Below are positions 10,451 to 61,043 of a DNA stretch of 64,000 bases, in pieces. The stretch is from Sphyrna mokarran (taxonomy: Eukaryota), in NCBI GenBank assembly GCA_024679065.1, contig JAGIQG010000008.1:97216001-97280000 (forward strand), in the 5' to 3' direction. Numbering within the stretch: the first letter of the stretch is position 1; each line of letters begins with the position of its first letter. A program made the position numbers and the translations under genes. The notes beneath the pieces were generated by a model. That model did not search any database. It saw nothing but the letters and a program-made list of their open reading frames with translations, and was not told where the DNA came from.

Positions 10451-10999
10451 CTAAATAAACAGAGCATTAAATATTAGTAGAATTGTTCAATTGTCAAAGC
10501 TAGAAATAAAAGAGATTCAGAATAAACTATTGAAACTATTGAGGAACAGTAGCAACTCAGATATTTGTCTTCAAAACATGGCAATGAAGTAATTATACCC
10601 AAATCATATCTATGATTCCCTAATGTGATTTTTAAGAAATACATTAATGGGATGTGGAAACCTCACAAAGACAACATTAGCTGCCTGTATCTAATTTCCA
10701 TCAAGAAAGTGGTGGTGAGTTATCTTCTTGAATTGTTGCAGTCCCTCTGGTGTAGATACACCCATAATGTGAAAGAAGGACTCCCAGATTTTGACCTGGT
10801 ATAGTTTCAATAGCACACATTGCTGCTGAAGAGCTTGTATCCCAGGATCACAACTCATAACCTATCCAGTTTAGAAAGCCAAGCCTTTAACTCTACTTAC
10901 CTGCCCAAACCTCAAACTTTGATTCCCTTGTCAAAACCATATATAACTCAGCCTCATATATATGGCACAGCTCTCTGGGCAAGGAATTCCTAGAATCCT

Positions 11000-37819: not shown

Positions 37820-38160
37820 GCATCCGGCGAAAGTGAAACAGGGCTTAGCGGAGTCCCTTCCTGCTTCTGGAACCGAGCGACCGAGAGAGTGACGGGGGGA
37901 CCTATGGGCCGAACTGGCAGCTGGTGGCCGTTTCTGGCCGTGCTGATGATTCTGGCACCGCTTTCAGGTGAAGGACGAGACGGGCGTCGCAGGCGGGGAA
38001 CGGGAGGGAGCGCACATTCCGGCGGATTGGGCCCAGCGCGGCGCGGGGCAAACCGAAACCGCACTCCGATCAGGGTGGGGTTTGTACTGGGGACTCTTGT
38101 TGATGATTCCCCGGGGCTGCAGATTAAGGACAGGGGCTGAGGAGGTTGAAGTGAAAGCCA
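37820..38160 (+). promoter_or_regulatory. CpG-rich promoter/first-exon region of gene B with IRF/ISRE-like motifs
   Basis: Dense CpG; GAAAGTGAAAC at 37829-37839, AAACCGAAAC at about 38050, AAGTGAAAG at about 38149. Confidence 0.6.
37904..37967 (+). CDS. Gene B exon 1: signal peptide
   Basis: MGRTGSWWPFLAVLMILAPLS then G|GTGAAG; 64 nt, phase 1, inside a CpG-rich island. Confidence 0.8.
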
Positions 38161-38426
38161 CAAATATTGAGTTCACCCTGATAGGGTCATTCGGCCTATA
38201 GTGACTGGTACAGCCCTTCCGGTTAGCCTCACTATCTACTCATTCAGCCCCTTTTCCCCAACAGATTTTCCCTACCCCTCCCCATTCAACTATTTAGCCA
38301 GTTTCCTTTGGAAAGTTATTATTGGGTCAATTTCAATGTCGTTTGTAGTTTCAAGGTTAGAGGATTCCCAGAGTTGTTTTTCCCCTTTCCAAAAGGGTTG
38401 TTAGTTTGATCTCCCCACCTTTGATC

Positions 38427-40043
38427 TTTTTTTTTATTAATTATTAAGCAACACGGCATGGGAAACAGGCCCTTCGGCCCAACGAGCCCACGCCGCCGTC
38501 ATACCAAATAGTAGCAAATACATTATCCTATTTTAATATTCCTATATAATAATATATATATTATTCCTAATATGGAAAATTTTCACCATAGGGACAATTT
38601 GTTACCCAATCAGCCTAAGAGCGAATTTTTGGGTTGTGGGAGGAAACCGGAGTGCCCGGAGAAAACCCACGCAACCACGGGGAGAACGCGCAAACTCCCG
38701 CAGACACCGGCCCAATTCCAAGTGTCTGCACAGCCACATCGATAGTCTCTGAGCTGTCATGGTGCCCTTCAGATGGTCCACATAAAGCACTCATTTACGA
38801 CATGAGGTACCAGGCAACCCATGAATCAACATCCAAGAGCTGTACCCGCACCACCTGCCGAATGCGTGCTCAAATTATGGACCGAATTACCTGTGGAAAA
38901 AAGCCGTAGTTAAACAGTCCTAATATATCCCTCTATCTGCATACCGCTCATGTGGCTGTCCAAGAGACCCTTAAACAGCCCCAGCGTGCCTGCTCCCACC
39001 ACCTTACTCGGCAGTGCATTCCACACCCCCACTACCCTTTGTGTGAAAAACTGCCCTCTAATATTCGTCCTATACATAGCCCCCCTCACCCTATGGCCAT
39101 GACCTCTCGTCCTATCCATTTCTAAAGGTGGAAAAAGTTTACCTCCATTTACTCTATCTATACCCCTTATAATCTTATACACCTCTATGAGATCCCCTCT
39201 AAGCCGACGTCTTTCAAGGGAAAACAACCCCAGTCTATCTAATCGTTCCTCATAAGACAGTCCTTCCATACCAGGCAGCATCCTGGTAAACCTCCTCTGC
39301 ACTCTCTCCAAGGACTCCACATCCTTCCGATAGTACGGCGACCAGAACTGGGCGCAGTATTCCAAGTGAGGCCTAACCAAAGTTGTATACAACTGCAACA
39401 TCAAACTCCTACTCTTGTATTCTATACCCTTTTCTATGAAAGCTAACATACTATACGCCTTCTTTATCACCTTCTCCACCTGTGAGGACACCTTCAGAGA
39501 CTTGTGAACCTGCACCCCCAAGTCTCTCTGCGTCTCTATGCTCCGTATAGTTTTACCTTTTATCCTATAACTCTCTTCTACATTTTTCCGGCCAAAATGC
39601 ATCACCTCGCATTTATCCGGATTAAATTCCATTTGCCATCTATCTGCCCAGTCTACCAACCTGTCTATGTCCTGTTGTATTGCCTGACACTGCTCTTCTG
39701 TACCCGCCAATCCAAGCATCTTGGTGTCATCAGCAAATTTGCTGATCTCACCACCTACCCCTACTTCCAAGTCGTTTATGTAGACCACAAATAGAAGAGG
39801 ACCTAGTACTGAGCCTTGTGGCACTCCACTAGTGACAGGCTTCCAGCCGGAAAAAGAGCCTTCCACTACTACCCTCTGTCTCCTCCTCCCGAGCCAGTTT
39901 TCGACCCATCTACATACCCGACCCTGTATCCCATGCGCCTTCACCTTCTCTATCAGTCTACCATGAGGAACCTTGTCAAACGCCTTACTGAAATCCATGT
40001 AGACGACATCAACAGCCTGTCCTTCATCAACTGTTTTTGTCAC
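38427..40043 (-). mobile_element. Young 5'-truncated CR1 with an uninterrupted 377-codon RT frame and SINE-like 3' UTR
   Basis: ORF 38910-40043: [30 protein letters not shown]; near-identical to 31130-32295. Confidence 0.95.
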
Positions 40044-40579
40044 TGTGAGGGTGTTGAAAGGTTATTGGGTGGGTGGTCACCCATTGAGGGGCAACTGTAC
40101 TAAGATATGTTGGATTTTCCCCCTTGAAAATCCTTATGTCTCAGTAAGGTTGCTTCTCCGTCAAAATTACAATGAATATAGCCCCGTCCATTAAAAAATC
40201 CTCGGGATCAACCAAGTGAGCCTTCTCTTTATTGCCTCAGATTGCAGATTATATCCTTAGATAAGGGGACAAAAACTGTTCACAGTGTGGCCGAATTAGT
40301 GCCTTTTATAGTTTCAGCAAGTCTACCTATTTTTGTATTCCAGTCCTTTTGAAATAAAGGCCAACAATCCACATGCTTTCCCTATAAATTGCTGAACTTG
40401 CCTCTTAGCTTTTTGTGATTTATGCATGAGGACCCCCCTCTAATTAGAGCTTTCTGTTGTCTTTTTCTATTTAAATAATATTCAGTTCCTTTGACCTTCT
40501 ATCATAAGTACATAACTTCATATTTTTCTACATTATATTCTATCTGCCAAGTGTTTTACCCACTCATTTAACCTATCTA

Positions 40580-43500
40580 AATACATAAAGGGCAAAACAG
40601 TAACAAAGAGAGAGTGGAGCCTCTTAAGGATCAACAAGGTCATCTATGTGCAGATCCACAAGAGATTGACGAGATCCTAAATGAATATTTCTCATCGGTA
40701 TTTACTGTTGAGGAAAGCACAGATGTCAGGAACTTGGAGAAGGTGCTGGAACTTGGAGAGGAGGTGCTGGAAGTTTTAAAGTGTATCAAGGTAGATAAAT
40801 CCCTGGGACCTGATGAGATATATCCCAGGACATTGTGGGAGGCTAGGGACGAAATTGTGGATCCCTAGCTGAGACATTTGTATCATTGATAGTCATGAGT
40901 GAAGTGCCTGAAGATTGGAGAGTGGCAGATGTTTTGCTTTTGTTTAAAAAGAGCTGCAGGGTAAAGCCTGGAAACTACAGGTCAGTGAGTCTCACATCTG
41001 TAGTGGGTAAATTGTTGGAAGGTATTTTGAGAGACAGATCTACAGCATTTAGAGATGCAAGAACTGATTAGGGACAGTCAGCAAGGCTAACAAACTTAAT
41101 TGAGTTTTTTAAAATTTTTTAAGTCTTTTTAATTTTAATTTTTTATTTTTAAATTTTTTAAATTTAATTTAATCCAGTTCTGGTCGCCTTACTACCGGAA
41201 GGACGTGGAGACTCTGGAGAGAGTGCAGAGGAGGTTTACCAGAATGCTGCCTGATATGGAAGGTCTGAGTTACGAGGAGAGATTAGGCAAATTGGGACTG
41301 TTTTCCTTAGAAAGACGTAGACTTAGAGGAGATCTGATAGAGGTGTACAAGATTTTGAAGGGGATAGATAGAGTAAACAGGGTTAAGCTTTTTCCTAGGA
41401 TGGACTCAAATAGCACGAGGGGTCACGGGCTTAGGGTGAGGGGGGTAAGGTATAATTTGGATGCTAGAGGGAGTTTTTTCACACAGAGGGTGGTGGGGGT
41501 ATGGAATGCGCTGCCAAGTAAAGTGGTGGAGGCAGGTACTCTGGAGTTATTTAAGAAATACTTAGATGGGCACATGAACAGAATGGGAATGGAGGGGTAT
41601 AGAAAACTGATTTAAAATAGGGATCATGAGCCTTGGGAGTCCCTGGGAAGTGTGTAAATAGATGATGATATTGATGTACTTGTTTTTATCCTACAGGTGC
41701 TTTGGTCCACCTTGTTGTCTAACAAGGGGCATACACGCGATGGGTCGTGAGAGGACTGCTCTTGGATCTTTTTTGAGAGTATCCTAGTGCTTCACGTTGT
41801 TAGTGTATGCTTGACCTGGACCATTTGATGGGCAACACGACAGCTCAGTGACTATCGCTGTGCTGTGCAGATACATGGATTTGGGCCTGTTTCTGTGGGA
41901 GTTTGCGCATTCTCCCCGTGCTTGCGTGGGTTTTCTCCGGGTGCTCCGGTTTCCTCCCACATCCCAAAGATGTGCTCTTAGGCTAATTGGCAAAACAAAT
42001 TCTCCCTAAATTGTCTCAAATTTGGTTTTTAATCCATAGATCTATAAACATGGACAGGGATCGCGGGTAGAGGTGGGAACGTCAGGGTGGCGGCGTGGGC
42101 TCGTTGGTCCGAAGGGCCTGTTTCCCGAGCTGTTTTGTTCTTTGTTCTTTGAGTTTTTGAAGGGGTAACCAAAAAGGTAGATGAGGACAGTACAGTTGAT
42201 GTTGTCTGCATGGACTTTAGCAAGGCCTTTGATAAGGTACCATATGGTATGTTATTGCATAAAATTAAATCTCATGGGATCCAGGGTGAGGTATCTAAAT
42301 GGATACAAAATTGGCTTCTTGACAGAAGCCAGAGAGTGGTTGTAGAGAGTTGATTTTCAAACTGGAGGCCTGTGACCAGCGGTGTCCCTCAGGGATCAGT
42401 GCTGGAACCACTGTTATTTGGATGAGAATATAGGGGGCATGGTTAGTAAGTTTGTAGATGACAACAAGGTTGGTGGCATAGTGGATAGTGAAGAAAGGAG
42501 GAAGTTATCTCCTTTGCAACAATCTTGATCAGTTGGGCCAGTGGGCTGACAAATGGCAGATGAAATTTAATTTAGACAAATGCAAGGTGAAGCATTTTGG
42601 TAAATTGAACTAGGGCAGGATTTCCTCAGTTAATGGTAGGGTGTTGGGGAGAGTTACAGAACAAAGACATCTGGGGGTACATGTTCATAGCTCCTTGAAA
42701 GTGGAGTCACAATGGACAGAGTGGTGAAGAAGGCATTCGGCATGTTTAGTTTCATCGGTCAGAACATTGGGATATCTTGTTCAAGTTGTACAAGAGATTG
42801 GTAAGGCCACTCTTGGAAAACTGTGTGCAATTCTGGTCACCCTGTTATAGAAAGGATATTATTAAACTAGAAAGCGTGCATAAAAGAGTTAGTAGGATGC
42901 TACCGGGACTTGATGGATTGAGTTATAAGAAGAGGCAGAATAGATTGGGACTTTTTTCTCTGGAGCGTAGAAGGCTGAGGGTCTATTATATATTATAAGT
43001 CTATAAAACAAAGAGAGCATAGACAAGGTAGATAGTCAATATCTTTTCCCAAAGTTGGGGGAGTCTAAAATTAGGGGGCATATATTTAAGGTGAGAGGGT
43101 AGAGATACAAAAGTGTCCAGAGAGGACGTTTTTTCACACAAGAGGGTGGTGAGTGCCTGGAACAAGCTGCCAGAGGTAGTAGTAGAAGTAGGTATAATTT
43201 TATCTTTTAAAAAGCATTTAGACAGTTACATGGGTACAATGGGTATAGAGGGATATGGGCCAAATGTGGGCAATTGGGACTAGCTTAGGGTTTTAAAAAG
43301 AAGAGTGGCATGAATTTGGGCCTGTGTCTGTGGGAGTTTGTGCATTCTCCCCATGCTTGCGTGGGTTTTCTCCGGGTGCTTCGGTTTCCTCCCACATGCC
43401 AAAGATGTGCTCTTAGGCTAATTGGCAAAACAAATTCTCCCTAAATTGTCTCAAATTTGGTTTTTAATCCATAGATCTATAAACATGGACAGGGATCACG

Positions 43501-43650
43501 GGTAGAGGTGGGAGCATCGGGGTGGTGGCGCGGGCTTGTTGGGCTGAAGGGCCTGTTTCCCGTGCTGTTTTGTTCTTTGTTCTTTATAGACAAATTGAGC
43601 CAAAGGGCCTGTTTCCATGCTGTAAAACTCTATGAACCTCTATGACTCTA
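40580..43650 (+). mobile_element. CR1 LINE (RT) nested in the older CR1, itself interrupted at 41110-42150 and 43313-43585
   Basis: [52 protein letters not shown]. Confidence 0.85.
41175..42150 (+). mobile_element. Young 5'-truncated CR1 with SINE-like 3' UTR
   Basis: Open RT C-terminus 41205-41615; TGAGTTTTT target-site duplication at 41101 and 42150. Confidence 0.9.
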
Positions 43651-44884
43651 TCTATGTTGTTTTGTAGACTTCTTTGTCATCCTAACTGCTTGCCTTCTCA
43701 TCTAGTTTTGTGTTATTGGCAAATTTAGCAATAATAACTTCACTTGTCCAAATCATTAATATGTATCGAAAATAATTGTGGCCTTACACTGATCCCTGTG
43801 ACACTCCACCATCCTGAAAACGTCCCTCTTATCCCAACTCTCTGTCTTCCATCTATACTAATACACTGCCTCAAATGGGCTTTTATCTTATTAAACAGCC
43901 TCTTGTGCAGTACCTTATTGAATGTATTGGAAATTCAAGCATATTACATCTATTGGTTACTCTTTATTTATCCTGCTTGATACCATCTCAAAGAATTCTA
44001 ATAAATTTGTAGGCATGATTTCCCCCTCATGAAACCATGCTGATTCAATTTGATAATATTATGTATTTCTAAATGCATCCTTTATGAACGACTCTAACAT
44101 TTTGTCAATGACAGATGTTAAGCTAACGAGCTATAGTTAGCTGTTGTCATCATCCTCCCTTTTTGAATAAGAGTGCTTTCATTGGCAGTTTTCAAATTAC
44201 CTAGGACTTTTCCAGAATTTAAAGATTCTAGTGCATCCACTAAGTCTGTAGCTACTTATGATATCCTAGGATTTATTGGCCTTTAGCCCCATTAGTTTCC
44301 TTAGTAATTATCTAGCAATTTTTTTTAAATTTCCCCCACCCTTTTTGCTCCTTGATGTCTAGTATTTTGGAATATTATTAGTGTCTTCTACTGTCTTCTG
44401 TGAAGATTGATACAAAGTATGTCCTGATTCCCCATTATTATTTCCCAATCTAATTCTCTAAGGGACTGATGATCACTTTGGCCTCTCTTTTTAATATATT
44501 TAATGAAGCTCCTACATTCCATTTTTATATTACTTGTTAGTTTACCCTAATGGTTTCTCTTCTCCCTCATTGTTTTTTTTTGATATCTTTTGTTTGTTAT
44601 AAAACTTTCCCAATCTTCTGACTTACTGCTAATCTTTGCCATTTTGCAAATTTTTCTTTCAGTTTAATACTATTCTTAACTTTTTTGGTTAACTACGGCT
44701 GATTTATATCCTTCATAAAATCCTCCTTCATTATATTTGCTATGAGTCACGAACTATTTTCATAAAAATGTCTGCCATTGCTGATCAGTCTTTTCTGACA
44801 GACTCCTTTCCCAGTCCGCTTCAATAATTCTGCCCTTTCTTTTGTTAATTACTCTTATTTAAATTTAGCACAGTTGTTTCAGGT

Positions 44885-45480
44885 CTTCAAAGTAAGAGGA
44901 CTTGAGTATAGGAATAAGGATGTCTCGCTGCAGTTATACAGGGCCTTGGTGAGGCCATATCTTGCATATTGTGTGCAGTTTTGGTCTCCTAGTCAGAGGA
45001 ATTGAGGGGGTCCAACAAAGGTTCACCAGACTGATTCCTGGAACGGCAGGACTGACATATGAAGAAAGACTGGATCAACTAGGCTTGTATTCACTGGAAT
45101 TTAGAAGAATGAGAGGGGAATCTCTTTAAAACATATAATATCTTGAGGGGACAGGACAGGCTAGATGTGGGAAGAATGTTCCCGATGTTGTGAAGGTCCA
45201 AAGCTAGAGGTCATAGTCTAAGAATAAGGGGTAAGCCATTCAGGAAGAACTTCAGTCTGAGAGTTGTGAACCTGTGAATTCTCTATCACAGAAAGCAGAT
45301 GGGGCCAGTTCGTCAGATATGTTCAAGAAAGAACTGGATATGATCCTTGCAGCTAAGGGATCAAGTGGTATGAAGAGAAGAGGAAGTGAGATACTGAGAG
45401 TGCATGATCACATTGAATGGTGCTACAGGCTTGAAGGACAAAAAGGATCTACTTCTGCATTTACTTTCTATGTTTCTGTG
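44885..45480 (+). mobile_element. CR1 3' fragment
   Basis: [19 protein letters not shown] remnant and CR1 tail. Confidence 0.8.
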
Positions 45481-46284
45481 ACTGAAGTTTCTCACATTCA
45501 AACTGAATGCTAAACTCTACCGTGTTATGGTCACTGTTTCCTAGGAGCTCTTTTATTCTGATACTGTATATTAAACCTGTCTCATTACACATCAGATCCA
45601 AAATACTGTGATCCTTGTTTGGGTCCACAACATATTCTTTAAAACTGTCCCGAATACACGCAATGAATTCTTCTTCATGGCTACTTTTGCCAATTTGATT
45701 TTCCCAATTCCAATGACAATTAAAGCCACTTATGATTAAAGTACTACCCTTTTTGCATTCTCCCTAATTTTTCTTGGTCCTACATTATAGATACTGTTAG
45801 AGGGGCCTATAGATTACTTCCACAAAGTCATCTTTCTCTTTTTATTTCTTGCCTCTGCTCACTTGGATTCTACATCTTCCAATCCAAGATCTATTTTTTT
45901 GCTATTGTACATATTCCATCTCACACTAACAAAGTTTCCTTCCTTCTGTCCTTAAGAAAAATCACATATCCTGATTATTTACTTCCCAGCTTTAATCTCC
46001 TTGTAACCACATATCAGTGATGACTATAAGACCATATCCATTAACCTCAATTTGTGCCATTCATTCATTGTTTTGTGATGCATATTATGCATTTAAGTAA
46101 AGAGTCATCAATTTTGCTTTTTTTTAACCATTCCGCCCCCCCCCCCCCCCCCCCCCCCGCCCTACTCTTATCCTACTTGCTGCTGTTGTTACATTGTACC
46201 TTCTCTCCTTCCCTGTCCCACTCTGGGTATCATTACCTAAATAGCTGCCTTGCAACACTGCCATTTCCTTTTGCTTTGTAAGCC

Positions 46285-48555
46285 TACTCTTATCCAGAAT
46301 GATTTTCCTGCCCCCACCCACCTACCCACTCCGAGGCTGTGCCCTCTAGTCCTGCTATCTTTGCTAAGCCGGAAGAGTCACTCAACCTCTACCCTATCCA
46401 TCCTCTTCATTATCTTATACGTCTCTATAAGATCCCCTCTCAGCCTTCTAAACTCCAAAGATACAAACCTACCTATTTGGTCTCTCCTCATAATCCAACA
46501 CCCTCATCTCTGGTATCAGCCTACTGAATCTTCTCTGCACCCCCTCCAAGGCTAATGTATCCTTCCTCGAATGCAGTAACCAAAATTGCACACAGTACTC
46601 CAACTGCGGCCTCACCAGTATCCTATACAGCTGCAAAAGTACCTCCCTACTTTTATATTCCATACCCTAACTATAAAGACCAAGAGTGCATTCACCTTCT
46701 TGATCACCTGCTGCACCTGCAGACTGTGTTTTGTGATTTGTGCACAAGGACCCCCAGGTCCCTCTGCACTGTTGCATGCTGCAGCTTTTCGCTATTTAAA
46801 TAGTAATCCTTCCTACCATTATTCCTACCAAAGTGGATAACCTCACACTTGCTAACATTATACTCCATCCGCCAGGTCCTCGTCCACTCACTCAACCTAT
46901 CCAGATCCTTCTGCAGTCTTTCCACACCTTCCATGCAATTTGCTTTTCCACTTGTTTTTGTGTCATCAGCAAATTTCGTCACCCTGCACTCAGCCCCTTC
47001 CTCCAGATCATCTTTGTAAATGGTAAATAGTTGAGGCCCCAGCACTGAACCCTGGGTCACTCCACTAGTCACCAGCTGCCAATCAGAATAGCACCCATTA
47101 ATACTTACTCTCTGCTTCCTATTAGACAACCAATCCTCTATCCAGTTTAATACCCTACCCCAACTCTCTGCACCCTAATTTTCTGCAGCAATCTTTTGTG
47201 AGGCACCTTATCAAACACCTTTTGGAAATCCAAAAACACCATATCCACTGGTTCCCCTCTATCTACTGCACTAGTCACTTCCTCATAGAACTCCAATAAA
47301 TTCATCAAACACGACTTCCCCTTCACAAATCTGTGCTGCGTTTGCTTGATCAAACAGTTCGTATCCAGGTGCCTCGTTATTTCTGCTTTGATGACAGATT
47401 CAAGCATTTTTCCGACTACAGACGTTAAACTAACTGGCCTATAATTCCTTGCCTTCTGTCTGCTACTTTTTTTAAACAGCGGCGTAACATTAGCCGTTTT
47501 CCAATCTTCCGGCACTTTCCCGGAGTCCAGCGAATTTTGAAAGGTAATTTCTAGGGCATCCGCTATCCCCTCTGCCATTTCCTTGAGAACCCTGGGATAC
47601 ATTTCATCCGGTCCTGGGGACTTATCTACCCTCAGCCCTGTTAGCCTATCAAGCACCACCTTTCTAGTGATTGTAATCTCATCAAGGACCTCATCTCCTA
47701 CCACCCTTTCGGGCAAGCTATTTATGTCCTCTTCCGTAAAGACCGACACAAAAATCTTATTCAAGGTCTCCGCAATATCCTTATCGTCCACCACTAAATC
47801 CCCTCTCTCATCCTCCAGGGGTCCAACATTAACTCTGGCTATCCTCCTATTCTTTATATATTTATGAAAACTTTTACTGTCCTTTTTCATATTTCAAGCT
47901 AGTTTAGCCTCATATTCTATCTTTCCTTTTTTAATCACCTTCTTAGTCATTCTTTGCTATTGTTTAAAACTTTCCCAATCCTCTGATCACCACCTATTTT
48001 TAGCTGCTTTGAACGCCTCAGCTTTTGATTTGATAGTCTCCTTAATTTCCTTGGAGAACCACGGCTGATTTTCCCTTCTCCTACAGTCCTTCTTCACCAT
48101 TGGAATATATTTCTGCTGAGTACCGAAAAAGATCTCTTTAAAAATCCCCCACTGTTCCTCAGCCGTCCTACAACCAGCGCACTCCTCCAATCCACAGTCG
48201 CCAATTCCTCTCTCATCCTATCATAGTCCCCTCTGTTCAAACATAGTACACAGGTCCGGGAAGCTACTACCTCATCCTCCATCTGCATCATAAATTCTAC
48301 CGTACTATGATCACTCGTCCCTAGAGGATCCCTCACATGAATATCCCTAATTCTACTGCCTCATTATAGTACCAGATCCAAGATTGCTAGCTCTCGTCGA
48401 TTCTGTAACATACTGTTTGAGGAACCCATCGCAACAGCGTTCCAAGAACTCTTCCTCTAGCCCACTGTGTCCGACTTGTGTCGCTCAGTCAATATGCAGA
48501 TTGAAATTTCCCACTACTAACGCTGTTCCGTTTTTGCACACACCTCTTATTTGTT
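46285..48555 (-). mobile_element. CR1 LINE ORF2 (endonuclease end plus RT), moderately degraded
   Basis: ORFs 46469-46663, 46704-47129 and 47147-47890 with RT motifs. Confidence 0.92.
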
Positions 48556-49116
48556 TGAAAATGCTGTAAATAATCAGCATGTTAGGACAGTTGACCAAAA
48601 TGTTGGCTGAAGATGCAGGTTTGAAGGACCATCTAAAGAAAGAAAGAGAAGAGGAGAGGTTTAAAAAAGAAATTCCAGAGCTTAAAGCTTAGACAGTGGA
48701 AGGCATGGCCGCCATTCATGGGATGATTAAAATTGGGGATGAACAAACGGGCAGATCTGGCAGGCTGCATCCATCTCAGATGGTTTCAGGGATGGAGAAC
48801 ATTACAGAGGTAGGAAGGCCCTGGAGGGATTTGAAAATAATGAGAATACCTCACCTTGATGAACCAGTGTCACCAAGCACAGAGATCAGGTGAGATAAAG
48901 GGTAACAGGATTGGGTGGGAAGCATTGGAATAGATTGAATAAGCAAATGAGGGGGAAAGGAATAGGAGGTTAGATGAAGCAATGTGCAAGGAGGCTGATG
49001 TAGAGCTGTTAAGTTATGATAGTCTTTTTACATTCTTTATTACATTGAAATAAATGTAGACTAGGTCTTGTCTGGTGGACACTAACAAAAACAGCCTTCT
49101 ATTATTAAATCTGCAG

Positions 49117-49470
49117 AAAACAAGTTGGAATTGAGAGTGAGTCAAAGTCCTGTGGAAGTAAATCAGAATGAAAATGGTCTCCTGCTGTGCGAAATTACTG
49201 AACTCACTGGGGCTACGTTGAACCCACAAAACTTGGGCGTATTATGGACTGTCACTCGTGGCACTGAAACATCAACAGCCTTTTCCTACGCTTTTGGAAG
49301 TATAAAGGAAGCGTGGCCAGAAGCTGAGCTTTTGGAAAGCTCCATTCTAAGTAGAAACATGTCATTGTTGCTAAGAAGTGTCACATTTAAACATGCCGGA
49401 CAGTACAAATGTGAAGTTGTCATTCCACCAAATGATAAGGCCTCTAAGATAGTGAAGCTTGAGGTTTTAG
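49117..49470 (+). CDS. Gene B exon 2: IgV domain, B7-H6/NCR3LG1-like
   Basis: Branch site ACTAAC at 49081, acceptor ctgcAG, donor TTAG|GTAAGT; 354 nt, phase 1-1. LLCEI...LGVLW...RNMSLLLRSVTFKHAGQYKCEVVIPP. Confidence 0.93.
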
Positions 49471-51115
49471 GTAAGTTGAATTATATGCAGTAATTGTAAT
49501 TTTTTATAACTTGCAGTGTAACCAAATGCCAACAGTTTCACATTTAAGTTTGTCTTTATAGCTTTTGGAAATGTAATCTGCTGGAAGGGAATGCCCTTAA
49601 TTATAAAAGCAAACTGCTGCAAATGATGGAAATCCTGAAATGAAAATGCTGTAAATAATCAGCATGACAGGCAGAATCTGTGGAGAGAGAAGCAGAGTTC
49701 CTTTCATCAGAGTGGTTAAAAAATAGTTTTTAACCTAGCATTTAATGCTTTTTGATCTGATGCATGTTGAGATCAAGCTATGTAATTTTAATATATTGTA
49801 CATCATCAATTAGTTGAATCAATAACAAGAGTAAAAGTTAAAATTGGAAATATTGGCTGTGTAAAACTACATTTTGAGAAGAAATCAAAACAAGTGTGTG
49901 TTTGGTTGAGGGAGTGACACTTGTCTCAAATAACCACATAGTTGCCTGGGGATAAACACTTTACTATTAAATATGATTAATTATCTGTAAGAGCCATTGA
50001 AGTATTTTTCATGTTTGGAGCTGAAACAGATTAAAAGCATGCACATACATATTAAGGCTTCTCTGAAATTTTAATGTTACTGTGTATGAAGAAATAAGGA
50101 GCTTACGTTTATCTAATTCCTTTTACTTCTGGAAGATGTCATTCATTCAGTTATGTTGAGTCTGCAACATAGCAACAGGTCTTTTTGTCCACCTTGTCAT
50201 GAAACCTTTTTGTTATGTTGAAGACAACTATCACCCTCAGCTTCTTGCTTCTAGAGAGAAAGCCCAATCTGTTAAGTCTTTTTTGATAATTTTGCAGTTC
50301 TGGTATCATCGTTACGAACTGTATTGACACCTACTCTGGCTGTATATTCATTTTATAGTATGGAAATCAGAACTGTGCACGGTGTTCTGAATGGGGTATA
50401 ATCATATTTCAATGCAAGTTTAACACTGTTTTTCAACTGTATCCTTCTATAAGTGAATCCCAGTACTGGATTTGCTTTTTTTAATAGCCTTATTAACTAG
50501 AGTTGCTTCTATTGATTAATATATCGGAATCCCGTAGATGCCTTCTTCTCTACTTCACTTCCACTTCTTATCCAGCCAGTATGTGGCCCCCTTATTGTTC
50601 TTGCCAAAATGCACCAGCTCCTACTATTGCAGGCAAATGAATTTCAGTGATCCATTTTGTTTAATAGTTTATTGATGTCATATATTTTTGTTACTTCTTC
50701 ACTGAGATGTCTACAGCTTCCACTTTGCTGCCTTCTGCAAGTTTTAGAATTGTACTTCGGTTCCAGAGTCCAAATTGTTAATGTAAATGGTGGACAAAGT
50801 GATCTCAGCAGTGCCAAGCACCACTTCCCATCTTTTGGCAGCTGACTAGCTACCCCTAAGCCCTACACAGTGCATTTTCTTTGGCCATCCATTTGGCCAT
50901 GTGTTCAACTCTCTTTTTAAACATAGGAATCACACCAGTTGTGCTCTTTTTCTCTTATTCCATTTATAAATTATTTATTTATATAAATAGCTAACAGTGC
51001 CTCTGCTGTTTCTTCACTAATTTATTTTAGCACGCTCATATTCAGTCTAATGCATTACTGTTCAAGTGTAGCTACAATTATTAGTGACACTAACTATATC
51101 CTTCTATTTTGACAG

Positions 51116-51442
51116 CACGTCCTACAGTGACTGTGATTTCAGAAAATATCGTGGAAGTTGGCACGGGGGGAGAGATGGTCTTGGGTTGTCAGTTAAGTGG
51201 ATATTATCCTTGTGACAGCAGTGCTGAATGGTTTCAGACAATCCCGTCACAAGGAGAGACAAAATTATTGAAGGACATTTGTATTGCCCCGCCAATCAAA
51301 AACCCTGATGGAACATGTAATGTAACCACTGAAGTTAGGTTGGAACCTCGTGTAAAAGACATTGGCAGCACTTTCGAATGCCATGTCACACACAAGACAT
51401 TTTCCGAGCCCCTCTCTGTAAAAGCTTCGGTGATTTTGAAAG
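51116..51442 (+). CDS. Gene B exon 3: IgC1 domain
   Basis: gacAG|CACGT to AAAG|GTCAG; 327 nt, phase 1-1. LGCQLSGYYP...W...PPIKNPDGTCNVTT...FECHVTH. Confidence 0.93.
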
Positions 51443-52142
51443 GTCAGTTGCAGTGACAAATGCAAAGTATAACAACATTTTTTTATTGAAAAACATTTAT
51501 CATTATCCAATGTACTGCAGTTTTTTTCTTGGGGAAACAACTAAATCAGAAACTTTTAGATGGATTTGTTTGATGCTGACAACTTTCTTGTGTTTATTAA
51601 GATGTTTTTACAAAAATGTTGATATGTAACTCACTCAACTTCTTTCTATTGATGTGATCTAATTAGATTACTTGTATGTTATGAATAATTATTTTGTTAT
51701 TGTTCTAAGCATGTGAGAGGTTTATCAAATTCATAAATATGTATTTTTAAACATAAAGTTAGCATTCCACCTAATGAATTGAACACCTTTTCCATACCAA
51801 GCATCTATTTCTGGCCATCAGATATATCTTGATGACTGCCTGATCTAGAGAAAGTTTAATTGATTTCAATTTTCCACTTCGTTATCTGAACAAATCTTTT
51901 TAATGGAAAATGATTGTTTCTGAGACTTGGCTCCAATCTTACCTATGGGCACTTTGTCCCTTGGGCAGTGCCAGGGAGTACAGGCTTGCATTGCCAGGGT
52001 GCCCATATGCAGGGGATGGCACCCTATACCGCCTGACCCCCTGGGGGGGTCTCCAGTTGCTTCCCCCTTCAATCCACTGGTGTTGGGCCGCTAGTTCCCT
52101 GAAAGTGGGGAGCTAGACTGAACCTCACTAGAATGAAATACT

Positions 52143-52405
52143 GGGGTGGCACAGTGATTAGCTGCCTCTCAGCACCAGGGATCCGGGTTCAATTCCTGAC
52201 TTGGGCCACTGTCTGTGTAGAGTTTGCAATTCTCCCCGTGTCTGCATGGATTTCCTCAGTTGTTCCAGTTTCGCCCCACAATCTGAAAGATGTGCTAGCT
52301 GAATGCATTTACCTGAACAGGTGCCGTAGTATGGCAACTATGGGAATTTCACAGTAACTTAATTGCAGTGTTCATGTAAGCCTTACTTGTGGTTAATAAA
52401 AGACT
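52143..52405 (+). mobile_element. V-domain SINE nested in an unclassified repeat (about 51930-52670)
   Basis: Head GGTGGCACAGTGATTAGC, V core, tail ending AATAAA. Confidence 0.75.
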
Positions 52406-53555
52406 TTAAATAGAGAATGTGGGATGGGAGATGTTAATGGGCCCAGAGAATTCAGTTCTGCCCCTCTAAAAGCATTAAAATGAAACGTAAAGTACTTATC
52501 TGGTGTTCCTGTCGTTTTCCAGCATGAATCAGACAGCACCAGAAATCCTGTGCTGGGAGATGCACACATGGCGGGAATGCATATGTGAATCTTACATATG
52601 TCTTGATGTGAGATTCTCCCACCACGCAGTGCTGGAAAATTAGTACGGCAGGGTGGGAGAATTGCCCTCATTGTCTCATTTCTATTTTGTCCAACTGATC
52701 TGTAATTTGAAAGACCGCTATCGGGTCACCTATAAGTCTTCTGGTTTCCAAAGATGATGGCCCCAAGCTATTCAATATTTCATCAATAATTTCTTAGTTC
52801 TGGTACCATGCTTATAATTTTTTCTCCACATTTTCTCTCATAATTGTGTATCTCTTTTACTAGTACATGATCAGAACTGTACACAGTACACTGAGTGCAA
52901 CCTGACCAGGTTCTGAGATAAGTTTAACAAATTCTGTGCTTCTAGAAATAAATCCCAGAGTTTTCCTTACTTTTTAATGCTTTTTGTTGTAATGCTATTT
53001 TGAGCAATTTGTTCACCTCTCTGCTAAGATCCCCTTGCAGTTCTACTTTTTATGACTGCTTTTTATGACTGTAAAGTGCAGTTGATGATTCTGTTTTTTC
53101 TTCGCAAGTGTACATCATTAATTGAGGCTAAAATTTATTTTTAACTACCTGGTCTGCAAATATTCCAATATTTTCTCTAATTATGTTGCAGTATTTTTCA
53201 GTGTTAGCTATGCCCTCTTGATGTTTGGTATCAGTTGCAAGTTTTGATCTAAAGTAATTTGTTTTCAATACCAAAGATCAATGTAAATTATAAATAACAG
53301 TTTCAGCACTCATCGTTATGGAACACTGCATTTATGTTACAAGTAACCAGTTTTCAAAGTAACACAACTGGGGTACAAACAATCTAAGATATTTGGGTTT
53401 GAAAATAAATGCCAATTAGCTGTGAGCACTGGCTGGCCCAGAGCTGTGCTAAATATTTATTGACTATTCTTTATCCTGTTCTACAATATTACATAGGTGA
53501 ATCGTGGTACAATTGAAACCAGTTGTGTGAGAAATATGAAACTTTTCTTTTACAG

Positions 53556-53672
53556 AAGCAGAAGTTCGTTGGTCAATTTCATCAATAGTCGGAAGCGTGA
53601 TTGGGAGTATTATTATTTCTGTTGCCCTAACAGCACTTGGAATTTTCTTCTATATGCGGTTCAAACATAAAG
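53556..53672 (+). CDS. Gene B exon 4: transmembrane segment
   Basis: ttttacAG|AAGCA to AAAG|GTAAG; 117 nt, phase 1-1. EAEVRWSISSIVGSVIGSIIISVALTALGIFFYMRFKHK: hydrophobic helix plus basic stop-transfer. Confidence 0.88.
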
Positions 53673-55634
53673 GTAAGGCTGCATTCTGGGCATTGTGTGT
53701 CAATTTGGACAGTTTAGGGAATAGCCTTGAGAGTGATGACACCAAAGGAAATTTGGCTTATGTACTGGGGAGGGAAGCTGTACATTGAGAACTTTTACTG
53801 CTGGTTGGTTGCTGTTATTGTAGCAAATTTGTGCATCTTCTGGTTAATCAATGGTATCTCAAATTTGCTAGCATTTTGTTTTTTGCTTCTGCTTATGGCA
53901 GTTCCAGCCAAATTTATAGGCATGTTGGCTTTGAAATCACTCCACAGGCTTGGAATGCCAATACATAATTGTTTCTGTATTGCTACAAAAAGAGAAACTG
54001 TTGAAGCTTTTTGTTTTGCGCTCATCAAGATAAAATCTCAAGAATGACAAATTTCAAAGGGAACTATAATTTATCATGAAGAAAGAGTGCCAATTGATTG
54101 GCAGGTGAGCATTGATTGTTGGAAGTGTTGCCGTGAAGAATGCACCGATTAACAGTTTGCAAGTTTTAGGTTAAATTGAAACTAGCCAAGTCGATTTTGC
54201 GCATGGCGTTTCTATGAGAATACACCCCTCACTCCCAAGCTTTTCTTTCGTTGAAAAAGATGCAATGCCCTGGACTTGTTTTTTTTTTACAAAGGACATG
54301 ACCCTCTGTGATTGTGTGAATAGCTGTAGTTTCTGGTAAGAGTGAGCCCCATTGTAAACCACCACCACCACCACCTACCCCTCTCCCCACTGCAACAGAT
54401 GACCTTGAAATGATTGAAACAACACAGTTTGGATTGTTAAATAAGTGCTGCTTGATTCCAGAATTACACTTAATGTTTGACCCTGTTTTCTGAGTTTTGT
54501 AAGCACTCACTGATTGAGTGCAGTTCATATTCTGCCTGTTCAGAATAACCAAATGTATGTGCTGTTTGATATGATCCACCAGATATTGGAATATAAGGCC
54601 TGGCATCTCACTGGCATAGGAACTCAAATCACATTACTCATTAATCTTTTTGGCTTGATGGCAGCATCCTGTTAGTGGTGAATACCGCTCATTGCTACTG
54701 CATGAAAGTGGCTTGAAACAGCTAGCTTCACCTGTTCAAATTCTTCTGATACCTTGTCCTTCCAGGGCACCAGAATTGTTAACCTTGAGGCCTATTCTTG
54801 AGTTTGTCGGCAAGCAATGGCACGATCAGGGTAGCCGCTTTTCTGCAGGAAAGCTTTTATGTGGCCTTTCTTGGCATCAAGATTTCATGAGCATGTGGCT
54901 TGGGATTTATTACTGAGGTTGCCAAGAAGACAGATCTTGTAGGGTTTGGAGCTGTTGTGTATCGACATGTATATTCATCAGAGAAAGTAGGTTTGTAGCA
55001 ATCGTAGTAAAAATAGGTAGTAGACAACTGGCAGATTTCTCAATTAAAAAATTTAAAGAAAGGAAGCTCATTAGATTGTTCTACTTCAAAGGTGTATTTG
55101 AATGTGGCATGGAGCCCATTAAGATGTTTAAGGAAATTCTTACCTGCAGCTTCAAATATAGCAAATGTATCATATACTTCTCAGAAGTATGAATGTGGTA
55201 GGTAGTAAGGGGTCATTCTCTTGATGCATTTTTCCTGGAAACCAACAAAAATGTTAGCAAGAACTGGGTCTAGAAGTGATAAAGTTGAACTTAGATGCAT
55301 AAGTGGCTCGGTTTATAAGTTCAATGAATGTTGTGGGGAATTTATTGAATTCATAAATATGTATTTTTAAGTTTGAGATAAATTCCATCTAATAACTTGA
55401 ATATCTCTTTCTTCAGTGTTGTTGGAACTGCAGTTATCCAGGCAAGTAGAGATAGTCCTTCTCACTCCTAACTTGTGTCTTGATGACTACATGATTCTTG
55501 AGAAATTTTTCAATTTTCTACTTCATTGCATGAACAAATCTTTTTAGTGAAAAATGATCCTGTGACCGTTGTTCCCCATGGTTCACTGCATCCATGTTTA
55601 TACAGGTTGCCCAAGATGCACAGAAAGTTTTTTT

Positions 55635-56265
55635 AAAAATTCATTTATAGGAAGTGAGCTTTGGCTAGACCAGTGTTTATTTCTCATCTTTAATTGTCTT
55701 CAAAAGGGCGGTGATGAATTGCCATTTTGAACTGCTGCAGTCTCTATGGTGTAGATACACCCACAGTGCTGTTAGGGAGAGTGTTCCAGGATTTTGCCCC
55801 AGTGACAGTAAAAGAACAGTGATATTTCCAAGTCAGGATGCGATGTGATTTAGAGGGAGCTTCCAGACGACTCTGTTCCCATGTGACATGCAGTCTTATC
55901 CTTATGGATGGTAACAGTTGTGAGTTTGGAAAGTGATGCTAAAGGAACCTTGGGGGTGTTCTGCAGTGCATCCTGTAGAAGGTACACATCACTGCCACTG
56001 TTTGTTGGTAGTGGCAGGATTGAACGTTTGATCCCAATCATTGTCCAGTTTCTTCAGTGTTGTTGGAACTGCAGTTATCCAGGTGAGTAGAGATAGTCCA
56101 TCTCACTCCTAACTTGTGTCTTGTAGATGGTGAATAGAATTTAGGGATTCTGGAGTTGAGTTACTTGCCACAGGATTCCTAGCCTCTGACCTGCCCTTGA
56201 AGTCACTGTATTTAAATGACTGCTCTAGTTTCTGGTCAACTGCAATCCCCAGAATGTTGCTAGGA
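55635..56265 (-). mobile_element. LINE 3' fragment
   Basis: Homologous to 12800-13275 and to parts of 10640-12020. Confidence 0.6.
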
Positions 56266-56675
56266 GATTTAGAGCTTTATGCATTATCTTGACTGGTTCA
56301 GCACAACATGAATTGGCCAAATGGTTAAATGAAGTATTCTGATAAATACTTTAGCTTCATAAAAATTAACAAGACCTGATGAGTGCAAGATGAAAAGCCT
56401 TTACAGTATATTCTCCTGGCCAGCAGCGATAATTATTTTTGTTGTATCTCATTTATTCTTTAATGATCTATTATATTTTAAAATTTCTTCTATGCTCCAT
56501 TACCAAAGATCTGCCTGTCTAGCACCCTTTCCAGATGTTCTTTATATTTATTCTCCACATCTTGAAGCTTCTGAAATAAAAGCAAAATACTGTGGATGCC
56601 AGAGATCTAAAATAAAATACCGGAAAAATCTTTCTGAATGATCCAACTTGAAAATGCTTTTTTTTTTATTCCTAG

Positions 56676-57098
56676 TTGTACCAAAAGTGTCACAAATTCA
56701 AAGACCCGCGCAAGTTGTACACAAAGAACTTGCAGAGTTTGTATGCCAAGTGTCTGGATATCGACCCAATGTTATTACTATCAGCTGGTATTTGCAGAGA
56801 CACAATGACAATGAATTGAAGTTGATCGCTGAATGGCAAGAAAACTACATATTCCATTTCCCTTTCATCACTGACAGGAAACTAGACAGGACTAGTAGTA
56901 AGAAGGAAAATGATAAGGCATGGAAAGTCAGGGCAGTTGGTTTCCAGAAAAATAATGATGGAACATTCAGCGTTTCCAGCGTTCTTGAGGTTTATCCTGA
57001 CATCAATGTGGACAATAATGCACAAATCATATGTAAAGTGGTGCATGCATCTGTCAGTGAAGGCATCACCAGAGCGATTGACTTACAAATTAAGGGAG
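56676..57098 (+). CDS. Gene B exon 5: post-TM IgC1 domain with a long internal insertion
   Basis: Polypyrimidine cctAG|TTGTA to GGAG|GTAAG; 423 nt, open, phase 1-1. FVCQVSGYRP...ISW...NNDGTFSVSS...IICKVVH. Confidence 0.9.
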
Positions 57099-59311
57099 GT
57101 AAGCTTTTAATCAAAATCTACTGTTCCATTAGGTGGAACTTCTGAACTCTTTCCAGTCTCCACTGTTTTGTGTCGTAAATTAATGATTTTAAATTAATGA
57201 TTAATGATATTTGCAGCAACATTTTATGGTTGTCCACATGTTTCTCTAGTTGAATGTTGCCATGGTGTTTCAGTGAGGTACCTGAGAGTGGGCCTCATGA
57301 CAAAGTTTGCCCTTCTCTCATAGATGACTGTGTTAAAATTACACATGTTGTAGTAAAATTATCCATCTAGAATTCTAAGTGTTTTAAAATTATATGATTG
57401 CTAACTTAAGAAATAAAGCTTTACGAAATTGAAAAGGTAAATTGGAGGGATAGCAGCACTGAAATGTTCAATATAGCATCAATAGATTAGAATATATCTG
57501 GAACCAAGGCTGTGAAAAATTGTGGAGGGAAGGGGGGAGAACTACAGCAATCCAGTAGAGAACAGAATGGAACTTAAGAAAAGTCTTTGGTCAACAGTTA
57601 CCAACGACAAGGTATAAAACATGTTCCTTTGTAATTTAGTGTTTCCTCCTCTAACCCTAATGCCAAATGCAGTCTTATAGATTTTTTCCATTAATAGCAT
57701 TATGATTTTTGTTAATTTAAGGCACAAAGTAGAAAAGGAGTGTCCTACCTTAAATTATATATTTTTAAAAGGAAATAATATAGACTTCAATATTATTTTG
57801 TAACCGTTTTGCAGCTTTTCTGGCCCTTGCACCCCTTCCATCTTTTTTTTAATGTTTTGATTTTCTATCACACTCTAGCTCTAATTTTGTCATACATCTT
57901 TTCAGTTTATCTTTTATCTCCACTCCTTCCTTTGTTGCATTGTTTTGAATCTCATTTAACATTTGAAAAATCTTCTGCTGATCCATGGTCCTATTTACCA
58001 ACTTAAAATCATACCATCGTATTACCCAATTATTCTTGTGTCTCTCTGAGATGTTGACATATTTCATCTTTACTATTTGCTGGCCTACTTCAGTTCACAG
58101 AAACGTTTGTCTTCTTTTCCTTAACTTTATCCATATAGATTTTGTTCTAACTTAAGCCTTTAAAATATCCTTGTATTTTAACAGTGGGATAGAATGCTTA
58201 ATGCACACTCAACCTCACTTTCTTCCGTCTGCATCTCTCCTGAAGAAGTTTCAGCAGGAATGTTAAGTTCCCAGTTTGTCCAAACCTTAAATAATTTTGA
58301 TTATAGCTGCTATATCATATTCATAAGCTACCAGTTCATTCAGTTTATTTTAATGATTTGTCCATTTGTTTACATACCAGTCAATTTTGAGTCCAATTTT
58401 CTTTTTGTTTTTTTTCTTTTTCCTATTATAAGTTTTTTGCTATCTTTTTATTCTTTTTGCTTCTCATTACCTCAAAGCCCCTTTCTCGTTTAGCATTTTA
58501 CCATTACATTTTCCCAATTAAGCCTTCTGCTTCTACTCCAATGGCTTGTCCCCCTCTAATCTCAAGCCTATTTTTCTTATCACTTCCTCAACATACTTGT
58601 TATATTCTTCTTGCTAACCTATTTATCCTCTTCACAAGGATGTTGGTGTCACTTTGGATGGGATGAAGGCTCCTTGGCTTCAATTTGCTCCCTTCTGTGG
58701 CTTTGGTGCTCAAGTTGGACATGCTGTCCGTTTTCAAACCCATTGACTTTGGTTTTTAGCTGCAAATAAAAAGCTATTTATTGATAGACTAGGAAATAAC
58801 TGGATGATTGTTAGAGAATATGAGGTTATTTATCTGATTTTAATCTGCTCGAAGTGATTCTCAGCAAATAATGCAATTGAGTTATTGGAAGTACCCCCTT
58901 TTGCCTGCCTCTCCCTACTTTCCCTCTATTCCATCACATTTACAATCTCCGGTTTTTGTCACTGCCCTGGTGTCAGAGATGAGATTCTGACCAATTTTTT
59001 TCCCCCCATTAGCAAAGAAGTCAAGAATTTTGGAGCAGTTTCGGGCTGGGAAAGCTGTTGAGGTTAGGTCAGGTTGAATATTTCAGAGTTAAGGTTGATA
59101 GATTTTTGTTGGGCAGGATCATTGAAAGAAAGCATTGTTAAATAATGTCCTTTACAATCTCATGACATGCCAAGGCTCTTTACAGCCAATGAAGTACTAT
59201 TGAATTATAGTCTCTGTTGTAGTTATGGAGTCAAGACGAATGGATGGGGGTATATGATGTGACAAGTGAAGATGTTCACTTCAACAGAAAGAATGAAAAA
59301 AAAGAGAATTA

Positions 59312-59608
59312 AGTTTAAAGTTTATTTATTAGGGTTATACGTAGGCTTACATTAACACTGCAGTGAAGTTACTATGAAAATCCCCTAGTCGCCACACTCT
59401 ACTGCCTGTTCGAGTACACTGAAGGAAAATTTTGCATGGCCAATACACCTAATCACGTCTTTTGGACTGTGGGAGGAAACTGGAGCACCCGGAGGAAACG
59501 CACGCAGACACCAGGAGAATGTGCAGACTCTTCACAGATAGTGACCCAAGCCAGGAATTGAACCTAGGTTCCTGGCGCTGTGAGGCAGCAGTGCTAAGCA
59601 CTTTGCCA
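59312..59608 (-). mobile_element. V-domain SINE
   Basis: Head, V core and tail on the minus strand. Confidence 0.85.
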
Positions 59609-59609
59609 C

Positions 59610-60300
59610 CAATCCACCTCATTTATTACTTAAATGGCTGCACAACCCTGAGGTATAGAAGGATCTAGATTTTCTAGCACATAAGTCTCAAAAAGTTAAT
59701 AATTAAGAAATTAAGAATATTAATGGAATTATATCCTTTAGTATATGAGGAATTGAACATTAAAATAAGGATTTTATGGTTCAGTTATAAAGGATATTGT
59801 TGAGACCTCATCAAATAATCTGTGCAGTTCAGAGGAGATTTGTCAGATTGATACCAGGAGTGAGTGTGTAATTCGGAAAGGTTAGACAGACTGGACCTAT
59901 TTCCCCTGGACGTTAGAAGATGAGAAGTGAGCTGAAGATTTTAAACAGTTTTGACCAGGGGGTTGTGTAAAGCATGTTTCCTCTTGTGGGTGAGTCTAGA
60001 ACTGGGGAGCACAGTTTTAAAATCAGGGGGTTTCCCTTCTAGGAGTGAGGTGAAGAGAATTATGTTTCTCTGAGGGTTGCGTGTTTGTGAACTGTCTGTT
60101 TCAGAAGAGTCATTGAGTGCCAACTTGAGTACCAAAGCCATAGCTGGGTCATTGAACATCTTTAAGATGGAATTTGATAGATTTTTGTTGGGTAAGGAAA
60201 TTTTGTTGGGTAAAGATTATTGGGCATAGAGGGGAATATGAAATGTGAAACGTAACAGGTTTAAGGGGTGAATGGCTAACTTTTCCTATTTTATATGGAG
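59610..60300 (+). mobile_element. Degraded CR1 3' fragment
   Basis: QLYRILLRPH-like and QRRFVRLIPG remnants. Confidence 0.6.
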
Positions 60301-60680
60301 TTAAGCTAGTGAACACCGATATCTAATTGGATGGTGGAATATATAGCTGGTCCCATGTTTCCAATTCCCTCCTGAGTGACGTTATCTTTTTGTTATGCTT
60401 GTCCTGAATTTGGAATGGCATTGCTGGTGTGTCGGAGGATTGGTACATGTGATAAAAACAAGAGCAGCAGCATGGTTAGGATGCAGGAGGTAGAACAGAG
60501 AGCAGATCACTTGTATAACTTACAGGGAAATAAAAAGGCTTAAAATAATGGACACAATATTGTTTGCTTAATACATAAATAGATAATATCCTCTAATTAT
60601 AAAAAGGTGAAGCAATAACATTTATCTTGAGAAGTTGTACCATTAAAACTGAATGCTTTGTGTTTTTTTTTCCTCTTTAG

Positions 60681-61043
60681 TTCCTCCTAAGTTGGCTAAC
60701 ATAATTAAGCCTCCAGTTGTGCACCATAACAATTCTGTGATGCTGGCTTGTCCGATAAATTTCTTCAAGCCACGTCCTCTGAAGATCATATGGTATAAAA
60801 TAGTAGATGGAGAGAAAATCCCTTTGCTGAAGCACAACAATGGAGTTGAAGAGAATTTCTGTTTCAGCAAATATACCCATCATATGGTTAAATTTGATTA
60901 TCCTGACCACACTCACAGTGTCTGCAGCATGCTGCTCTTTACTGCAACAATCCAAGAAGATGAAAACAGTCAGTATTCCTGTGAAGTTGGACACATTGGT
61001 TTGAAAGATCCAGTGGAGGAATCTGTTCAACTGAATGCAAAAG
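60681..61043 (+). CDS. Gene B exon 6: second post-TM IgC1 domain (gene continues beyond the window)
   Basis: tctttAG|TTCCT to AAAG|GTAAC; 363 nt, open, phase 1-1. LACPINFFKP...IIWY...YSCEVGH. Confidence 0.9.

Follow-up and report, generated by a model that had tools for sequence, protein, structure and literature searches.

A B7-H6-like receptor gene of Sphyrna mokarran with C1-set immunoglobulin domains placed after its membrane segment, probably in the cytosol

We describe a gene of Sphyrna mokarran that encodes a B7-H6-like receptor chain in which a run of C1-set immunoglobulin (Ig) domains follows the predicted transmembrane (TM) segment. The gene was found in a stretch of 64,000 nucleotides (assembly GCA_024679065.1, contig JAGIQG010000008.1, positions 97,216,001 to 97,280,000 of the forward strand), hereafter the window, whose own coordinates are used throughout. 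Of this gene, which is conserved among cartilaginous fishes, the window covers the 5' portion with exons 1 to 6; exon 6 ends in a GT donor, and the gene continues past the window. The best-supported reading of the chain, and in our judgment a probable one, is that the six C1 domains after the TM segment lie in the cytosol. C1-set domains are a hallmark of the extracellular machinery of adaptive immunity, being found in Ig, T-cell receptors, major histocompatibility complex (MHC) molecules, B7 proteins and tapasin. To our knowledge, reports of such domains are confined to immune molecules that are extracellular or luminal.

Results

Gene structure and transcript evidence

Six exons form a single open frame for a signal peptide, a V domain, a C1 domain, a TM segment followed by RFKHK, and two further C1 domains (Table 1). 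Exons 2 to 6 are each preceded by AG and followed by GT, have lengths divisible by 3, are in phase 1 and contain no stop codon. A sequence-only reading of the window had proposed this chain of phase-1 GT-AG exons, open to its end and with the last exon still ending in a donor, and its coordinates match those found here.

Transcript evidence comes from a public sequencing run (X1), not recorded as RNA and searched as contigs, which contains 14% of the sampled words of 51100-61050, an interval of which the four exons make up 12%. One contig (3273 nucleotides, nt; depth 20.3), placed on 51105-57104, joins exons 3, 4 and 5 back to back. Its positions 420-746, 747-863 and 864-1288 fall on 51114-51440, 53554-53670 and 56674-57098 of the window with 0 mismatches and 0 gaps over 869 nt, skipping 2113 and 3003 bases with GT..AG ends. 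The TM exon is joined to exon 5 in a transcript, as had been predicted, and because the spliced contig matches without mismatch or gap, we rejected the reading of the exons as a chance pattern. The contig has 419 nt 5' of exon 3, compared with 418 nt for exons 1 and 2 together, and by its length this portion fits those two exons. Beyond exon 5, the contig continues for 1985 nt, a length that suffices for five further C1 domains and an untranslated end, judged against an orthologue of 967 amino acids (aa).

No contig of run X1 skips the TM exon by joining exon 3 to exon 5, and none reads through the TM donor, with a depth of 0 at 53705-53904. That depth also led us to reject, for this run, a short alternative tail made by read-through (38 codons, then a stop), and no short tail exon was seen there after the TM donor. 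Further joints within intron 4 were set aside as non-canonical, with short sides, and within high-copy repeats. Such repeats in introns 3 and 4 reach a summed depth in run X1 of 15396 at 52305-52504 and 5486 at 55705-55904. Between the TM exon and the later C1 exons (53672-56676), neither tblastn nor an Ig-hallmark scan revealed another V-like or leader-like Ig exon, as had been claimed. Two stop-free stretches in the same interval, flagged by a loose Ig-hallmark pattern, proved not to be Ig-like. Taken together, the gene model of six exons in one mRNA that includes the TM exon is near certain, and exon 4 may be a cassette exon.

Table 1. Features of the window, with positions counted from its first nucleotide
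Feature	Position	Strand	Description
Exon 1	37904-37967	+	Start ATG, 21 codons plus 1 base, signal peptide, GT donor (from translation)
Exon 2	49117-49470	+	IgV, B7-H6-like; 2 Cys, 1 sequon; J-like Gly motif absent at end
Exon 3	51116-51442	+	Putative membrane-proximal extracellular C1-set; 5 Cys, 1 sequon; within the spliced contig
Exon 4	53556-53672	+	117 nt, symmetric; short stalk, about 25 uncharged residues, RFKHK; predicted stop-transfer TM helix
Exon 5	56676-57098	+	First post-TM C1-set, 140 aa; Cys23, Trp37, Cys119; long C-D insertion; no sequon
Exon 6	60681-61043	+	Second post-TM C1-set, 120 aa; 4 Cys, 1 sequon (NNS); GT donor at end
Retroelement frame	38910-40043	-	Reverse-transcriptase-like, first intron
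Retroelement frame	40614-41615	+	Reverse-transcriptase-like, first intron
Retroelement frame	46704-47890	-	Reverse-transcriptase-like, first intron
Second family member	235-702	-	Ig exon (C1 and V exons in this and the next row)
Second family member	10065-10466	-	Ig exon

Domain identity of the exons

The Ig exons can be assigned with established profiles. Exon 2 scores 30.4 bits against Pfam V-set (cut-off 26), and exons 3, 5 and 6 score 30.3, 35.4 and 26.0 bits against C1-set (gathering cut-off 21). The three C1 exons also carry the canonical Cys of the B strand, Trp of the C strand and Cys of the F strand, which correspond to columns 23, 37 and 88 of the family profile. Exon 4 exceeds the cut-off of no Pfam family; the highest Kyte-Doolittle mean over 19 residues is 2.31, and RFKHK stands after the hydrophobic stretch. 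The proposed likeness to B7-H6 holds for the order signal-V-C1-TM and for the V-set and C1-set assignments above cut-off, and it does not extend to a short non-Ig tail, since the TM exon is spliced here to C1-set exons.

Comparison with solved structures places human NCR3LG1 (B7-H6) chains first for exon 2 (E 5.2e-5). For exon 3, the Protein Data Bank matches are an IgG hybrid (3.7e-10), UrIg2 (9dmx, 6.4e-10) and NCR3LG1 (3.4e-9), and for exon 6 they are light-chain constant domains (E 1e-8). Exon 5 has only weak matches, the best at E 0.0027. Its AlphaFold2 model is an Ig sandwich with a mean predicted local distance difference test score of 84 and disordered residues at 63-79, and Foldseek relates this model to Ig V-type domains (Fab, nanobody, MPZL1) and to MHC class II beta chains. 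Exon 5 and the other array domains are predicted to adopt Ig beta-sandwich folds.

The exon 5 domain (56678-57097) also has an insertion of 40 residues between strands C and D (residues 41-82), present in all relatives that we read. In it, residues 48-60 form an additional hairpin and residues 63-79 a charged loop that is disordered.

Orthologues and wider family

A phmmer search of 1.84 billion representatives with exon 5 gave 180 matches at E <=0.001, of which 72 were at E <=1e-10. That there are only 180 indicates a distinct clade and not C1 domains generally. Many of the matching proteins are 700-2158 aa long, with the exon 5 homologue beginning near residue 280-295, and the relatives that we read consist of a signal, V, C1, a TM segment with basic residues, and a C1 run that ends at its last strand. 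Such relatives occur in sawshark, sawfish, horn shark, lungfish, bichir, caecilian and tree frog, where all are named "uncharacterized protein", and further ones in chimaera, Xenopus and newt; a Bombina protein is named NCR3LG1 by NCBI.

With a sawshark query, we recovered 14 orthologous chondrichthyan sequences of 890-974 aa. Their architecture is signal, V, C1, TM and six C1 domains, the exons of the window map contiguously and in order on 14/14, and all share a conserved C-terminus directly after the last Ig domain, with no tail. One of them (P0179), a frame of 949 aa, comes from a Logan contig that at 3886 nt is too short to accommodate introns. The single frame in the 14 orthologues and the intron-free length of this contig place exons 5 and 6 in the same transcription unit as the TM exon. 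Homology searches of exons 5 and 6 in other chondrichthyans and in amphibians had been suggested, and homologues were found in both, as these orthologues and as relatives in frogs and a caecilian.

The closest orthologue is LOC144498908 of Mustelus asterias, with identities of 88% in V, 93% in C1, 71% in TM, 81% in exon 5 and 90% in exon 6. Exon 6 retains 63% identity to Callorhinchus. In pairwise comparisons of the 14, mean identity is 0.71 in C1 and 0.60 in both V and the TM exon, and lies between 0.48 and 0.62 across the six domains that follow the TM segment. In the AlphaFold2 model of the Mustelus orthologue, a helix at 272-285 is followed by six confident beta sandwiches.

At 0.60, the TM exon is more conserved than a simple anchor would usually be. 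It carries small residues (Gly, Ser or Ala) at every third or fourth position, and its border is rich in Tyr, with a motif Y-M-R-x-x-Y-K conserved among the orthologues. Such a pattern hints at helix-helix contacts or a sorting signal.

A paralogue in Heterodontus francisci (P0001) has near-identical post-TM repeats, seven by profile and eight by phmmer, in which the canonical Cys and Trp are replaced and between which acidic linkers lie. These repeats look like a recent tandem exon duplication. In nine proteins with long uncovered stretches, Pfam found only Ig families, plus RVT_1 and LAP2alpha. We rejected the two proteins with these additions (P0068, reverse transcriptase; P0077, LAP2alpha) as plainly merged gene models and not cytosolic fusions.

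Topology signatures across the membrane segment

Among the 150 representatives listed, a single internal hydrophobic segment with one or more C1 domains after it occurs in 98, and we compared the two sides of the segment by descriptive counts. In these 98 proteins, the 12 residues after the TM segment hold on average, per protein, 3.6 Lys plus Arg and 0.86 Asp plus Glu, compared with 1.87 and 2.37 in the 12 residues before it. The hydrophobic segment itself has about 26 uncharged residues on average, and the best 19-residue Kyte-Doolittle mean across the family is 2.2-3.5.

Cysteines differ strongly between the two sides. Of 503 C1 domains after the TM segment, 236 (47%) have the canonical Cys pair, compared with 121 of 135 (90%) before it, while 89% and 95%, respectively, retain the Trp of the fold. 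As a control, we used four proteins of the same match list in which the array stands before a C-terminal TM segment; there, the pair is present in 44/45 domains, the remaining one being a partial match. Among the 14 orthologues, non-conserved cysteines number 148 in 9423 post-TM residues and 3 in 3151 pre-TM residues, a 16-fold difference in density, and the Cys counts of post-TM domains differ between species and are often odd.

Sequons show a similar asymmetry, with observed numbers at 1.69 times the shuffled expectation before the TM segment versus 1.19 times after it. The sequence-only reading had drawn on the sequons of the window, and its counts are right: exon 5 has 10 Asn and no sequon, and there is a single sequon in each of V, the first C1 and exon 6. 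The argument that it built on the Asn residues of exon 5 is weak, with the exon 6 sequon conserved in most orthologues (see Discussion). Overall, the cysteine, sequon and charge patterns fit a reducing compartment for the array.

Frog proteins with PYRIN and C1 domains

Two of the matches, from the frogs Eleutherodactylus and Hyla, have neither a signal peptide nor a hydrophobic segment. Instead, they carry a PYRIN domain at residues 9-84 (E 1.6e-17 and 8.5e-19) ahead of a series of C1 domains. When these series were compared with frog TM proteins, the arrays after the TM segment matched at E 1e-54 to 1e-85 across 336-671 residues and the parts before it at only E 1e-8 to 1e-10. PYRIN is a cytosolic death-fold domain, and its presence suggests that C1 domains of this clade are able to function in the cytosol.

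A query with the N-terminal 230 residues found 17 proteins, 14 of which, from 10 frog species, carry both PYRIN and C1-set domains. These proteins (P0083, P0095 and P0183-P0194) are uncharacterised predicted models that have PYRIN and at least four C1-set domains, several of them being 552-554 aa long.

Other features of the window

The first intron, of 11 kb, contains three open reading frames resembling reverse transcriptases of retroelements (Table 1). A second family member lies head-to-head with the gene, on the minus strand. Its C1 and V exons have 54-63% identity to three representatives (P0028, P0034 and P0035), and its TM segment and array would fall before the start of the window.

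Discussion

The proposed placement of the C1 domains after the TM segment in the cytosol is indirectly supported by the charge bias, the cysteines, the sequons and the frog PYRIN arrays. In the chain as we picture it, the signal peptide would place V and the first C1 outside the cell, and the hydrophobic segment of 25-26 residues with its trailing basic residues would stop transfer. The six C1 domains would then be synthesised and remain on the cytosolic side, beginning a few residues past the membrane. The exterior part may, speculatively, be a ligand of an NKp30-type receptor, and the inner array may act as a binding or scaffold module that links the cell interior to ligand display or signalling, like the B30.2 domain of butyrophilins. 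Skipping of the TM exon, which is supported here only by database isoforms, is also possible and would yield a wholly secreted version of the chain.

Several observations weigh against a cytosolic array. Post-TM domains 1, 2, 3 and 6 retain the Cys pair in 13 or 14 of the 14 orthologues, with loss confined to domains 4 and 5; such invariance is expected of disulfides that form in an oxidising compartment. The sequon of exon 6 is present in 11/14 orthologues, as often as both ectodomain sequons, and lies in a conserved block. NCBI models of the caecilian Microcaecilia (P0155) and the horn shark Heterodontus (P0161) include isoforms from which precisely the TM segment is missing, and a Bombina isoform (P0039), with no hydrophobic segment, is 34 residues shorter than its partner. 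Because all exons are in phase 1, the frame survives skipping of the TM exon, and the entire product would then be secreted. The TM call itself rests on hydropathy and charge, and the counts of cysteines, charges and sequons treat related proteins as independent and are descriptive only. Run X1 was the sole run found, is not recorded as RNA, and was searched as contigs, which lose rare isoforms.

These observations raise the alternative that the functional product is a secreted, fully luminal chain of signal, V and seven C1 domains, similar to UrIg and made by TM exon skipping, with the TM form as a membrane-anchored by-product or a regulatory form in which the inner array would play no part of its own. 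The frame-keeping phase-1 exons, the isoforms of the caecilian, the horn shark and Bombina, the invariant Cys pairs in 4/6 post-TM domains and the sequon kept in 11/14 orthologues all favor it, and sharks do have secreted and membrane proteins with multiple C1 domains in UrIg and UrIg2, as described in PMC12227049. However, the single contig seen includes the TM exon, with no joint of exon 3 to exon 5, and 98 of the 150 listed representatives carry a mid-protein TM segment followed by C1. The TM exon is also conserved, both in identity (0.60) and in its border motif. A secreted protein should not tolerate labile, often odd cysteines at 16 times the density, extracellular arrays keep 44/45 Cys pairs compared with 47% here, and the PYRIN fusions show that this type of array works without a signal peptide. 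We consider this alternative unlikely on this balance. A dual life of the chain is possible, with the array inside the cell when the TM exon is included and outside when it is skipped, and this could explain the kept Cys pairs.

Both halves of the chain could also end up luminal or extracellular if the hydrophobic segment failed to stop translocation, as a marginal, slipping helix or a peripheral or re-entrant one; something else would then hold the protein at the membrane. The segment does contain several Ser and Gly residues, a rough hand sum with biological-hydrophobicity values comes to about 0 kcal/mol, and the Cys pairs are conserved in four domains. Against this stand its length of about 26 uncharged residues, the basic excess on its C-terminal side in 98 proteins and the family Kyte-Doolittle range of 2.2-3.5. 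A hairpin would need a longer segment, the orthologues P0004 and P0151 show no second hydrophobic one, and 14/14 orthologues end at the last Ig strand. The asymmetry of cysteines and sequons across the segment likewise speaks against this reading, and we regard failed stop-transfer as quite improbable. Even less credible, to the point of being nearly negligible, is that exons 5 and 6 belong to a separate downstream gene, with the joint arising from a read-through chimera or a faulty assembly. Exon 5 has no leader before it, Logan contigs can be chimeric, and some database models of the family are merged, for example P0068 and P0077. Yet the same contiguous order recurs in 14 species, with little variation in length and a common stop, and again in lungfish, bichir, caecilian and frogs; an independent Logan contig from another species gives the same single frame, and the joints are exact at GT..AG.

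If the array is cytosolic, the expectation of immunologists that C1-set domains are extracellular or luminal would change, and B7-H6-type ligands would gain an inside sensor comparable to the B30.2 domain of butyrophilins. The family spans chimaeras to amphibians, and in frogs its arrays are joined to PYRIN. A single symmetric exon would decide between a secreted and a membrane-spanning chain, which makes for a simple test system, and the proteins already exist in databases as uncharacterised models. We offer the tentative speculation that jawed vertebrates have long used C1-set arrays for recognition or as scaffolds in the cytosol, and that in fishes and amphibians, where the arrays follow a B7-H6-like NK-cell ligand, they would signal interior conditions to the cell surface. 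It is similarly conceivable, though we would not bet on it, that the frog PYRIN-C1 arrays feed an inflammasome-type pathway as part of a family of intracellular innate sensors based on antibody domains. Within the names that we looked up, this putative family had no member among amniote or teleost entries. The literature search, in which supplements were outside the scope and coverage of the relevant frog and shark B7H6 work was incomplete, returned no description of a TM segment followed by C1-set domains, of PYRIN-C1 proteins, or of the six LOC names tried.

Comparison with known systems

A close known counterpart is human B7-H6 (NCR3LG1), the ligand of NKp30, which shares the signal, IgV, IgC1 and single TM segment, and whose chains are the best or among the best structural matches of exons 2 and 3. 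The match of exon 2 to NCR3LG1 has an E of 5e-5, and for exon 3, the IgG hybrid and UrIg2 are slightly ahead of NCR3LG1. The tail of human B7-H6 is short, unrelated to Ig, and carries signalling motifs, whereas the tail here would be six C1-set domains. The similarity of the ectodomains is low. The ectodomain and TM segment appear to fit the B7 family, and B7-H6 above all, while the tail does not.

Butyrophilins such as BTN3A1 (V-C-TM-B30.2) combine a B7-related ectodomain with a folded intracellular domain and are the closest functional model. The B30.2 domain of BTN3A1 senses a cytosolic ligand and signals inside-out. No B30.2/SPRY domain was detected here, Pfam giving only Ig families on P0004.

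UrIg and UrIg2 of elasmobranchs are similar in having a non-rearranging V domain and 3 to 11 C1 domains, with a TM segment in UrIg2. PMC12227049 describes a VJ-type V with a split leader, C1 arrays and, in UrIg2, a TM segment after the whole array, which leaves every domain of UrIg2 outside the cell. Here, by contrast, the TM segment follows the first C1, and the V exon is without a J-like motif.

The use of extracellular-type beta-sandwich modules (FnIII, Ig) inside the cell is known from integrin beta4, titin and obscurin. Integrin beta4, in which FnIII modules follow the TM segment as a cytoplasmic tail, is the best precedent, although in all three the domains are FnIII or I-set and not C1-set. 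Within the C1-set itself, a parallel is offered by the predicted PYRIN-C1 proteins, seen only in frogs (for example Hyla sarda LOC130284740), which have the same C1 repeat clade as the frog post-TM arrays, with PYRIN at the N-terminus and without the ectodomain and TM segment.

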